Translations under genes and position numbers: made by a program
Shown here: piece by piece, positions 8,256-25,234 of the stretch
Layout of the letters: each line of letters opens with the position of its first letter
How positions within the stretch are numbered: the first letter of the stretch is position 1
The notes under the pieces: generated by a model
Seen by the model: only the letters and a program-made list of their open reading frames with translations
Databases searched by the model: none
What the model was told of the DNA's origin: nothing
Assembly (NCBI RefSeq): GCF_006345805.1
Contig: NC_042999.1
Span: forward strand, 80,042,001-80,106,000
Length of the DNA stretch: 64,000 nt
Origin: Octopus sinensis
Lineage: Eukaryota
Reading direction: 5' to 3'

Positions 8256-8689
8256 TAGATAGATCGATAGATAGATAGATGGATAGATAGATAGATAGAT
8301 AGATGGATAGATAGATAGATAGATAGATAGATAGATAGATAGATAGATAGATAGATAGATAGATAGATAGATAGATAGATAGATAGATAGATGGATGGAT
8401 GGATGGATGGATGGATAGATAGATAGATAGATAGATAGATAGATAGATAGATAGATAGATAGATAGATAGATGGATGGATGGATGGATAGATAGATAGAT
8501 AGATAGATAGATAGATAGATAGATAGATAGATAGATAGATAGATAGATGGATGGATGGATGGATAGATAGATGGATGGATGGATGGATAGATAGATAGAT
8601 AGATAGATAGATAGATAGATAGATAGATAGAAAGATAGATAGATAGATAGATAGATGGATAGATAGATAGATAGATAGATAGATAGATA
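8256..8689. repeat. (GATA)n/(GATG)n tract, left boundary of the retrotransposon array
   Basis: About 434 bp of GATA units with GATG variants, directly abutting the 3' end of element A. Confidence 0.97.
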
Positions 8690-8988
8690 TGTTTCTTTAT
8701 TAGCCACACAGGGCTGCACACAGATAGAACAAATTACAAGGTAGAGCTTTTGTTTTGAAGGTTTAAAAAAAAAAAAAAAAAAAAAAAAGGAAAAAAAATT
8801 GATCGATAGGGATCGTTATCACAGAAATGTCAATATGAAGTGTAAAGGGGAGGACAGGTGAGGTTTACCCGTGGAAAGAAAAGCCTACGGAAAAGACCAC
8901 GGTAACCTCGGTCAATGAAGTCACATTTTATATTTCTTTTTTTTTTTTTTTTTGCAAATAAGCAACTCTCTGTTTTCGATTTCTGGGT

Positions 8989-11900
8989 TCATAGGACTAT
9001 GCTCAAGGTGGCTTCGTCATTCATACGTGCCATTCTTGCTACATTCACCCATCTTTTTTTAAAACATTCGCTAGACAAAACTTGCCTCTCTACTCTCACT
9101 TTCCTTTTCAAGTGGTACTTGAAGAAGTTGATGAGAGATTGACCAGAGAGGAAAGTGTTTGTCTCCAATCCTTTCAGACGCGTCCACCAGATACATTCTT
9201 TCGCCATAGCCACAAGGATGAAAATAGCTCTTCCTTCCCGTTTGAAGGAAGGAGGCGTGACAATATTGACGATAGACTCAGCTGATAAACCGACTCGTCC
9301 CACACGTGACAGCATTGTTCGACATAAGCCCACAGGTCGGAAATTGTTGGACACTGAACGAGTGCGTGCAGAACGGTTTCGTCGCTCTGACCGCATCTCG
9401 GGCAGGTCGGCCCCGTGTTTCTCGAGCCGTGTCTGTAGAGCTTATCCCGAACGGGTAGCGCTTCTCGGTAGCACTGCCAGGCCAGGGATCTCTGGAAGTT
9501 GTCCATGGGCCCTGGCCCGAAAGTCGTCCCGAACAGGCGGGTCAGGTACTCCTCGTCGACGTCCAGGTACGTCCCGAGCTCGTCGTCGTACCTCCCCTCC
9601 ACTAAACCCCTATAGAATGCTTTGGTTGTGTTGAAGTCACTTAAGGTCGACCCAGGACGGCAGAGTTGCTTGAGAGCAACGCGACACTCGCGGTGCCATT
9701 CGCCCTTCCTCGGCCTCTTTTTGATCCACGACTGCAGTTCGGTCATGGAGACGAGCTGCGGGAAAGCGTGCCTCACAAACGGCGACCACACCTGTTCACC
9801 GTCGTCTACATAGAGCCAGAGATGTCGCAGTCTCAGCGCGTGTCTGCGCATCATCAACCACGGCATGCCCAGCCCTCCTTTTAACGGGTGTTGACAGCAA
9901 ATGGATCGCCTGACCATCGGGACGCATCCTTTCCACAAGAAGCGAAAGAGGATGCGTTGTAGTTTGGTGATGGTAGGGTCGGGACAAGGTACGACGGTCA
10001 GGCGGTAGTAGATGACGGACGCGATGTACGTGTTCGCCACCTCCGCTCGACCTTTTAGGGACAGTTTCCTCTCGGCCCATTGCCGGGCGAGAGTGACCAC
10101 CCTACTCGTTATCTCGTTCCAGTTCTTCTCCACTTGGAGGTCCGGACCAAACCAGACCCCGAGCAACTCAACCGGGCCGTCGGTCCAGCGTCCCACGACG
10201 GAGGCGCTGGTGGACGGCATGGGCTTGCTTCTCCAGGTGCCTAGTCGCAAGCCCACTGACTTTTCCCGGTTGATTTTCGCTCCTGTCACCGCTTCGTAGT
10301 TTTTCAGTGTCTCGCCGACCAGCTCGATGTGCTCGTGGCTAGACACTATGACGGTGACGTCGTCCGCGTATGCAGACACGCTCGTCCCGCATCCCAATTC
10401 TCGCGGGATGTCCCTTAGAGTCGCCAGCTTCCGTAGTAGTGGCTCAAGAGTCAATACGTATAGAAGCGCCGAGAGGGGGCATCCCTGACGGACCGAACGT
10501 GCAATGTCGAAAGGTCTCGATAGATGTCCATTTACGCGAATTACCGAACGGGACCGAAACCAGCCGCTCTCAGGACTGCCTCCAAGTATCGATGGTCTAC
10601 CCTATCAAAGGCTTTCGATTGATCCAAGTTGATCAGGGCTCCACCTATGCCAGGTTCGTTAACTACCCTGTCTATGATGTAGCGCATCAGATGGAGGTTG
10701 TCATGGATGGTCCGGCCTGGCACGGCGCATGTTTGCGCCTTGTCGACCAGTTTCTCGATGACAAGCGCCAACCTCTTGGCTAGCACCTTGGCCAAAATTT
10801 TCAAGTCTGCATTAAGCAGAGTGATGGGCCTAAAGTTATCTATTACATTTCCCTTGTTTAGATCTTTCTTCAGCAGTGTTACGGCTCCTCGGCTCACAAA
10901 ACCAGGAATGCTCCCGTTTTGCTGCCATTGCAGTACACCGCCGCCGCCAGAGATCTCCAACAAGTCTGGCATACATTGTAAAGCTCGTAGGGTAGACCAT
11001 CCAAACCCGGTGATTTGTCCCTCGAGCATTCTGCCATCGCTTCCTGCACTTCCGCCGCCGTGATGGCACCTTCGCAGCACCCTGCCTTTCTTGTCGAGAG
11101 TCGTGGTAGGCTATGTAGGTAGGCACTGAAGTCCACCCTACGTTCTTGCCCTCCACTCGTTCCGAACAGTCGGGCAAAATGCTGCTGAAAGGCCTCACAC
11201 ATTTTACTTGGCTCGAGCATTCGCGCCCCTGTTCATCTACCAGTGACCGAATGGTGGCTTTGTTGCCCTGTTGCGCCTCTGCCACCCGGGCCTCTCTCGC
11301 GGCTCCAACACCTTCGTTCCTTAGAGCACGCATCCTAGCTCTGACAGCACATCCTTCGTGTTTGGCGTTGAAGTGTTGGTCGAGGGCCAACCTCGCCGCC
11401 AAAACGTCGGATGCGATGCCGCTTCTAATTGCCTCTTCTAGCTTCTTACTAGCTCACCCTCTACTCTATTTCTGTCTATGGCTAGTGCTTTGCTGTACCT
11501 AATCGCTTCTTCTGCTTTTACTGCTCTCTTGAGGGCAAACCACCATTTGTGTGTTGATGATGGCTCCCGTCAAAGCCCTCTTACTAGTGTGCTAATCCGG
11601 TCTCTGAAAACTTGTCTCGATGGGAAAGACGCGTTTAGTTTCCAGTATCCGGGACCCTGCCTAACTGTCTTACCTAAGTCTAGCGTACATGTCACAAGTT
11701 TGTGATCCGTGTAGCTGACTATGTGGAATTGTGGACATCCTATGCTATCTCTATCTACTGTCCTACACAGTATCCTATCTAGATACGATCTCGACGACCC
11801 GATGCGGTTGCTCCATGTCCACGTTGGCGCATTCGGTGTTCTAGTCGGAACCTGTCAGACAGTTGAAAGCGTCTGAGCAGGTCTCTGAGGCATTTGCATC

Positions 11901-24851: not shown

Positions 24852-25086
24852 TTTGGAAATAAAATGGCTAAATGAAACCACGAAGGCTATGAGAATTTTT
24901 TCTTTTAAATTTTGCCCACAAGGGGCAAAATTTTGTGTCGATATTTATCAAAGGTTTACAGTGGATGTTGTTGCACAACTTTTAAGCACAAAATGTTTGT
25001 CAATATACACTTTTAAATAGTCAAAATAAATGATTACCTTCGGAGCTGAAACGACATCACATCCGTCAGAGAGAGAGAGAGAGAGA

Positions 25087-25234
25087 GATAGATAGATAGA
25101 TAGATAGATAGATAGATAGATAGATAGATAGATAGATAGATAGATAGATAGATAGATAGATAGATAGATAGATAGATAGATAGATAGATAGATAGATAGA
25201 TGGATGGATAGATAGATAGATAGATAGATAGATA
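25087..25234. repeat. (GATA)n tract, right boundary of the array
   Basis: About 148 bp, preceded by (GA)n at 25068-25088. Confidence 0.95.

Follow-up and report, generated by a model that had tools for sequence, protein, structure and literature searches.

Microsatellites are established targets of long interspersed nuclear elements (LINEs), and insertion into ACAY, AC, TC, TTC and TAA repeats has been described (PMC3812793). Crocodilian Tx1 families target (TTCC)n/(TTTC)n (PMC4494074), and Togen families target TG (PMC4640811). For a target-specific short interspersed nuclear element (SINE), proposed to be mobilized by Tx1 families, Kojima described 'tandem copies sandwiching a TSD' (target site duplication; PMC4494074). 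Microsatellite-specific Tx1 and R1 lineages, as well as head-to-tail arrays of target-specific copies, are already well described (PMC3812793, PMC4494074), and a family has been regarded as target-specific when more than 20% of its genomic copies are flanked by the target (PMC4494074). A LINE that targets GATA repeats, or an association between GATA repeats and LINEs in octopus, was not found in the literature, a search that did not extend to Repbase and Dfam. Here, we describe a 64-kb stretch of the Octopus sinensis genome (assembly GCF_006345805.1, contig NC_042999.1, positions 80,042,001–80,106,000; referred to as the window), in which five LINEs, named A–E, alternate with (GATA)n arrays and a sixth copy, F, is located at 62.9 kb. 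We propose, with a probability of about 0.68, that this L1/Tx1-type LINE uses target-primed reverse transcription to insert itself specifically into (GATA)n·(TATC)n and that its insertions formed a nested head-to-tail pile-up.

The GATA arrays were called on the plus strand with Tandem Repeats Finder (TRF), and all coordinates refer to the 64-kb window. Six (GATA)n arrays within positions 8255–25234 alternate with five mutually homologous elements on the minus strand, in the following order:

8255–8689: (GATA)109 array containing GATG variant blocks; it flanks A on the 3′ side and bounds the whole array downstream (TRF and unit map)
8690–14608, minus strand: element A, 5919 nt, full-length L1/Tx1-type LINE
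14609–14742: (GATA)33 array between the 5′ end of A and the 3′ end of B (TRF)
14743–16025, minus strand: element B, 1283 nt, 5′-truncated, starting at position 4756 of A
16026–16182: (GATA)39 array separating B and C (TRF)
16183–17604, minus strand: element C, 1422 nt, 5′-truncated, starting at position 4584 of A
17605–17768: (GATA)41 array separating C and D (TRF)
17769–18799, minus strand: element D, 1031 nt, 5′-truncated, starting at position 4993 of A
18800–18950: (GATA)38 array separating D and E (TRF)
18951–25069, minus strand: element E, 6119 nt, full length, second subfamily
25070–25234: (GA)9 followed by (GATA)n, ~41 units by TRF, forming the 5′ flank of E

Elements A and E are essentially full length, since their 5′ untranslated regions (UTRs) are homologous from approximately nucleotide 5. 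The G+C content of the element bodies is 43–53%, compared with ~35% in the surrounding DNA (8690–25069 of the window). GATG variants are arranged differently in each spacer, and a single 4-nt phase is kept throughout each of them, as determined from the unit map. An earlier reading of the same DNA from its letters and open reading frames (ORFs) alone, referred to here as the first-pass annotation, had described five minus-strand elements with (GATA)n on both sides of each, 5′ breakpoints that all differ, and 3′ ends that run without poly(A) into TATC. The six TRF arrays that flank A–E and the three separate truncation points of B, C and D are in agreement with this description, and the 3′ ends read exactly as claimed.

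On the minus strand, the 3′ junctions are GGCTAATAAAGAAACA/TATC for A–D and GGCTAATAAAAGAAAGT/TATC for E, where the slash marks the end of the element. The same junction, …AATAAAGAAACA/TATCTATCT, is found in the sixth copy, which lies on the plus strand close to the end of the window in the following context:

62677–62895, plus strand: tRNA-derived SINE G with the LINE 3′ domain (…CTCTGTGTGGCCAATAAAGAAA), directly upstream of F
62896–62916: TGTC/TCTA-type stretch similar to the 3′ flank, forming the 5′ flank of F
~62917–63042, plus strand: element F, a 3′-UTR-only copy of ~125 nt, third variant, ending in GGCTAATAAAGAAACA
63043–63092, plus strand: 3′ flank of F, consisting of a degenerate TATC/TGTC repeat

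Across the six copies, the register at the 3′ junction can also be written as …GAAACA/TATC or …AAAGT/TATC, and terminal poly(A) is absent from all of them. The 3′ junctions of A–F are in the same one of the four possible registers in 6/6 cases, with TATC always on the sense strand, so every copy combines the target repeat on both flanks with a fixed orientation and a fixed 3′ junction. When the 5′ junctions are included, 12 of the 12 fall in GATA/TATC-type repeats. Perfect GATA/TATC runs of at least four units account for only 268 of 47,030 bases outside the array; given this rarity, the 12/12 placement and the single register shared by all six copies, the position of the junctions is not a matter of chance. 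At two 5′ junctions, the element and the repeat share short stretches of microhomology (3 nt, ATC, in C; 5 nt, TCTAT, in D), as is expected when 5′ ends are joined following target-primed reverse transcription. SINE G begins directly after (TA)26, and F follows 21 nt past its end, so a SINE and a LINE also stand head to tail here.

The copies within the array are not equally related. The mutual divergence of A–D is 0.7–3%, whereas E differs from A–D by ~22%; on this divergence E is a separate subfamily, so the array holds two subfamilies, and F represents a third variant. The association with GATA is thus kept across subfamilies that are 22% diverged. In 906 columns common to A–D, 4 private substitutions were counted in A, 15 in B, 8 in C and 2 in D (chi-square test, p ~0.004), and these unequal loads imply that A–D differ in age or stem from different source copies. 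Simple duplication among B, C and D is excluded by their three distinct 5′ breakpoints. Based on the differing breakpoints, the unequal private mutation loads and the microhomology at two 5′ junctions, we conclude that at least five separate retrotransposition events lie behind the array. Repeated insertion into (GATA)n, as proposed in the first-pass annotation, is upheld, and it took place in one orientation and one register. The best explanation for the locus is that a single microsatellite was turned into a 17-kb polar array by at least five sequential hits.

Conceptual translation and Pfam searches gave the order of features as ORF1 with a knuckle, Exo_endo_phos (apurinic/apyrimidinic endonuclease, APE; E-value 1.1e-5), RVT_1 (reverse transcriptase, RT; 4.5e-12 and 1.1e-12) and a C-terminal zf-RVT (4.6e-8). 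By tblastn, the APE precedes the RT in both A and E on the minus strand. The domain matches are:

Element A, minus strand: ORF1 at 13235–13749; APE at 12009–12379; RT plus zf-RVT at 9315–11110
Element E, minus strand: ORF1 at 23597–24121; APE at 22304–22678; RT at 19601–21361

No Pfam match was obtained for ORF1, which in translation ends in a CX2CX4HX4C knuckle in both A and E. The ORF1 of the Tx1 clade is of the zinc-knuckle type and not of the mammalian Transposase_22 type. Among solved structures, the best match of the RT was human L1 ORF2p (E-value 1.4e-33), with R2 proteins at ~1e-15; the RT was queried as a composite conceptual translation that spans frameshifts and takes 15 residues from E. 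From the domain order and L1 ORF2p as the best solved match, A–E are classified as APE-type LINEs of the L1 group (L1/Tx1), in line with the Tx1-like label of the first-pass annotation. Membership of the family in the Tx1 clade, which is itself defined by RT phylogeny, is likely, and we treat the family as a candidate member. L1-Tx1 is the only L1-group class named among the recently active LINEs of Octopus vulgaris (PMC13282606).

As assembled, the reading frames of both A and E contain many frameshifts and stops, with at least six frame breaks in ORF2 of A. Private 1-nt indels among A–D are unusually frequent relative to substitutions, and for this reason some of the frame breaks may be residual long-read assembly errors rather than real frameshifts. 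In A–D, and not in E, an internal A17–25 tract is located directly after the stop of ORF2 (for example, at 8990–9020). Next to it comes a long T/C-rich tract whose length varies, and A carries a ~100-nt deletion there. The last ~300 nt of A–D may be a separately acquired 3′ module.

Relatives of the family were found outside the window. The closest named ones in the protein search, with 64% identity, come from the octopod Argonauta hians and are labelled as hypothetical proteins. In two protein searches, the nearest relatives were 64–85% identical and came from A. hians or from short metagenome/Logan contigs, and no relative with more than 85% identity was found. Two A. hians loci, L001 and L002 (both from GCA_054771915.1), contain multiple LINE and SINE 3′ ends with a conserved 3′ domain. 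This domain, …CTGTGT.GGCC.TTGTGGCTAATARAGAAA, is common to the LINEs and at least four SINE types, both in the octopus window and in Argonauta, and the shared Argonauta 3′ end of ~35 nt reads …TTCGGCCCTTGTGGCTAATAGAGAAATC. In 12 of 12 such ends from L001 and L002, the microsatellite tail is absent, so a terminal repeat that belongs to the element irrespective of its insertion site was not seen among them. Two Argonauta SINE copies have clear TSDs (TATTATCTTT[C/G]TGCC and TATATT[G/A]CATGA[C/T]ATCC); in both, …GAAATC closes the element proper and TAT opens the TSD. A SINE dimer around TCTATAG..CAGCAC provides a third, ambiguous case. On this small sample, (TATC)n is a concatemer of the TSD start common to the two insertions, which would explain the invariant …ACA/TATC register in the octopus. 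A conserved 3′ hairpin was considered as a further shared feature and dropped, as RNAalifold predicted no consensus structure among 14 LINE and SINE 3′ ends.

Head-to-tail arrangements recur in these relatives. L001 contains a head-to-tail dimer (12827–13323), and L002 contains a trimer of SINEs in the same arrangement (2900–3362). Same-strand pairs have their 3′ ends at 804/1137 in L001 and 9857/10159 in L002, and one Argonauta LINE is followed by a second 3′-UTR fragment within ~120 nt. In a more distant relative with 41% identity (L114; ENA ERZ26052130, contig ctg11195c), full-length units of 7547 bp that are mutually 94.5% identical follow each other head to tail, joined as …CAATAAATAATATCA/GCCAACC; the name of this contig ends in 'c', which may denote that it was called circular. 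One Argonauta copy lies ~45 nt from an (ATCT)15 array in matching orientation (L001, 12123–12260). Six further contigs (L003, L005 and L116–L119) end before or exactly at the conserved 3′ end and thus gave no junctions. Four of them, L116–L119, are Logan unitigs of the same 62%-identical relative, each from an independent run assembly (SRR11869384, SRR11869390, SRR11869391 and SRR11869394). They all end exactly at …CCCTTGTGGTTTGAATAAA, as expected if many copies diverge right after the 3′ end. Among contigs of JGI metagenomes, an exact-pattern scan for the 3′ end plus TATC gave no matches and a protein-guided scan gave a single irrelevant locus with 32% identity. A 17-mer scan of GTDB prokaryote contigs gave 106 matches, all in ordinary bacterial contigs and at approximately the number estimated for chance.

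The 5′ flanks and the surroundings of the array bear on whether the repeat is the target of the element or its tail. The features concerned, besides those listed above, are:

25236–25357, plus strand: 5′-truncated tRNA-SINE of another SINE family, with B-box-like GGTTCCGGGTTCAGTCCC and a (GT)n tail at 25358–25436
29809–29953: (GATA)36 array without an adjoining LINE or SINE 3′ end
49307–49537, plus strand: intact-looking tRNA-derived SINE, 231 nt, with a LINE-type 3′ domain, ending in …CCCCTTGTGGGCAATAAAGAAATA
52861–53013: second element-free array, (TAGA)38

Since insertions always add downstream of the body of an existing copy, the most upstream element reports the original 5′ flank. In E, this flank is (TC)9 followed by (TATC)n, and no same-strand LINE tail lies upstream that would account for these repeats; beyond them there is no same-strand element, and the plus-strand tRNA-SINE at 25236–25357 abuts the last GATA array. 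F is flanked on both sides by a degenerate TGTC/TATC repeat, which on the 5′ side is not the tail of an upstream LINE either. The claim that E and F carry 5′ T[AG]TC repeats unexplained by any upstream LINE tail therefore stands. The (GATA)36 and (TAGA)38 arrays show that element-free targets exist in the same window, and we count them toward a real target as well. Together with the Argonauta relatives that are devoid of tails and the TSDs that start with TAT, the 5′ repeats of E and F lead us to favor (GATA)n as a real target, with pairing by a co-transcribed UAUC tail probably reinforcing its choice. The left flank at 8254 is unrelated to the SINE at 25236, and we therefore rejected the idea that the array had split this SINE.

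Several observations weigh against GATA-specific integration. The five array copies and F amount to just two independent loci in one 64-kb window, and in four of the six copies the 5′ flank is merely the tail of the neighboring copy. The arrays total ~300 GATA units with spacers of a uniform 33–41 units, which suggests that each insertion probably brings repeat units and that the repeat is at least partly element-made. The preference for TAT at the start of the TSD is derived from two clear TSDs and one ambiguous dimer only. The SINE at 49307–49537 ends in …GAAATA and is followed by a unique 25-bp TSD, CATG[T/C]CATTCGATTAATGTTCAAAA (copies at 49282–49306 and 49538–49562), with no GATA repeat, and this insertion into unique DNA indicates that the machinery of the lineage is not intrinsically restricted to GATA. 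Finally, given the frameshifts in A and E, no active source copy was seen.

We infer the nicked strand, priming by GATA, the role of a co-transcribed tail and the genome-wide behavior of the family from this anatomy, and the proposed reaction would proceed as follows. The APE endonuclease would nick the GATA strand, and the freed …GATA-3′ end would prime cDNA synthesis on the RNA right after …AAUAAAGAAACA. An AAUAAA signal is located only ~6 nt before the end of the element; with the signal so close to the end, transcripts would run 10–30 nt into the downstream repeat and thus carry UAUC units that could pair with the primer. Such pairing would fix both orientation and register, and slippage could add units, as documented for UnaL2 (PMC1636434). 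Such an effect of co-transcribed target sequence is also cited in PMC4494074 for site-specific elements. Microhomology would then serve to join the 5′ end to the TATC strand, in many cases once synthesis had terminated prematurely. New copies would again be flanked by (GATA)n, so the locus would keep offering targets. A stronger form of this scheme, which we regard as unlikely, is that the choice of target is carried by the RNA and not by the endonuclease: a copy that has landed in (GATA)n would make UAUC-guided transcripts, which would steer its daughters to other GATA arrays. If true, target choice would amount to a heritable, sequence-programmable 'target memory', and a lineage would switch targets by landing in another repeat.

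In a different account of the same junctions, which we find doubtful, the tail came first and homing second. Here, (TATC)n would be a 3′ tail made by the element through expansion of its terminal motif by RT slippage, as in UnaL2 and the I factor; annealing of the RNA tail would place new copies into old tails, and element-free (GATA)n would not be preferred. Such an origin fits the similar array of 33–41 units behind the copies, the sum of ~300 units and the four of six 5′ junctions that are simply the tail of a neighbor. In other LINE clades, both repeat tails and slippage on the template have been documented (PMC1636434, PMC3747384), and the Argonauta relatives end in …GAAATCTAT, which resembles one unit in the TATC register. 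However, in the two Argonauta SINE copies with clear TSDs, the TAT of TCTAT belongs to the TSD and not to the element, and the relatives are entirely without repeat tails. A tail also does not account for the ~41 repeat units on the 5′ side of E, where there is no upstream same-strand element, or for unoccupied GATA arrays of the same size nearby. Moreover, templated copying would be expected to leave a variant-unit pattern common to the tails, and none is seen in the unit map.

The number of integration events can be questioned as well. If the RT jumped between RNAs through their UAUC tails, one or a few target-primed reactions could each have deposited several copies. End-to-end jumping is known for non-LTR (long terminal repeat) reverse transcriptases (cited in PMC4494074), and both the common orientation of all array copies and the similar spacer lengths would follow from it, while the junction microhomology is equally compatible with a jump and with end joining. 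Against this stand the unequal private loads (B 15 versus D 2 in 906 columns), two subfamilies that are 22% apart within one array, and a distinct variant-unit pattern in each spacer. These counterpoints are not decisive if the RNAs stem from different source copies, and we consider template jumping very unlikely. We assign the lowest credence, that of a highly improbable explanation, to an origin at the DNA level, by unequal crossing-over or duplication between GATA arrays, or to misassembly through the shared microsatellite. Long microsatellites are prone to recombination and to assembly trouble, and the high ratio of 1-nt indels to substitutions among A–D hints at long-read errors. Nevertheless, the three 5′ breakpoints imply that B, C and D are not duplicates of each other, private variants are found in each copy and in each spacer, and similar head-to-tail arrangements are present in independent assemblies (Argonauta L001 and L002, and contig L114). 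Sequential target-primed insertion into (GATA)n is thus the reading that we retain.

Elsewhere in the window, a tandem duplication of ~1.64 kb (58193–59881 versus 59837–61512, 98.3% identity) is located in AT- and TGTA-rich microsatellite sequence. An Rfam scan of the whole window gave no matches.

If confirmed by a genomic census, the family would bring (GATA)n as a new tetranucleotide target to the APE-type LINEs known to be specific for microsatellites, and it would extend the L1/Tx1 group to a new host phylum. The array illustrates how, in the repeat-rich genomes of cephalopods, a polar island of transposable elements several kilobases long can grow from a single microsatellite. Such arrays pose difficulties for assembly and annotation, and counts of 'L1-Tx1' elements and simple repeats in octopus genomes would be inflated by them. 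The octopus system is also suited to asking whether the endonuclease or pairing by the RNA tail sets the target specificity of a LINE.

When the octopus elements are compared with described systems, they are most similar to Kibi, Koshi and the crocodilian Tx1 families, which are likewise L1-group LINEs of the APE type: their insertions into a simple repeat keep one orientation, the repeat is present on both sides and poly(A) is lacking. Tandem pile-ups of target-specific copies have been described for these families, as they are here for the octopus (PMC4494074, PMC3812793). The difference lies in target and host, as the known targets are (TC)n, (TTC)n and (TTCC)n/(TTTC)n in vertebrates, whereas the octopus element is found in (GATA)n in a cephalopod mollusc. 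Waldo, Mino and Dong belong to the R1 and R4/Dong clades. They resemble the octopus family in being non-LTR retrotransposons directed to microsatellites, (ACAY)n, (AC)n and (TAA)n, respectively, and DongBg is from a mollusc (PMC3812793). Unlike them, the octopus element combines zf-RVT with an RT of the L1 type, and its best match among solved structures is L1 ORF2p.

Zepp and HeT-A/TART show variable 5′ truncation and home to poly(A) tails or chromosome ends. The Zepp clusters of Chlorella and Coccomyxa and the HeT-A/TART arrays of Drosophila are similar to the octopus array as polar or nested clusters in which LINEs insert beside or into earlier copies (PMC3446292, PMC5537684). In contrast to both, the octopus copies are spaced by a tetranucleotide microsatellite, and their locus is apparently internal. 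The octopus family, with its 3′ domain of ~35 nt that recurs in several tRNA-SINE families and its lack of poly(A), resembles the stringent LINEs UnaL2, with (TGTAA)n, and the I factor, with (TAA)n, and their partner SINEs. The tails of UnaL2 and the I factor comprise few units and are part of the element (PMC1636434), whereas the octopus arrays contain 33–109 units and are also present on the 5′ side, and close relatives of the octopus family, unlike UnaL2 and the I factor, have no repeat tail. In summary, the octopus family looks like a new repeat-specific member among the site-specific LINEs, and not a new type of system.

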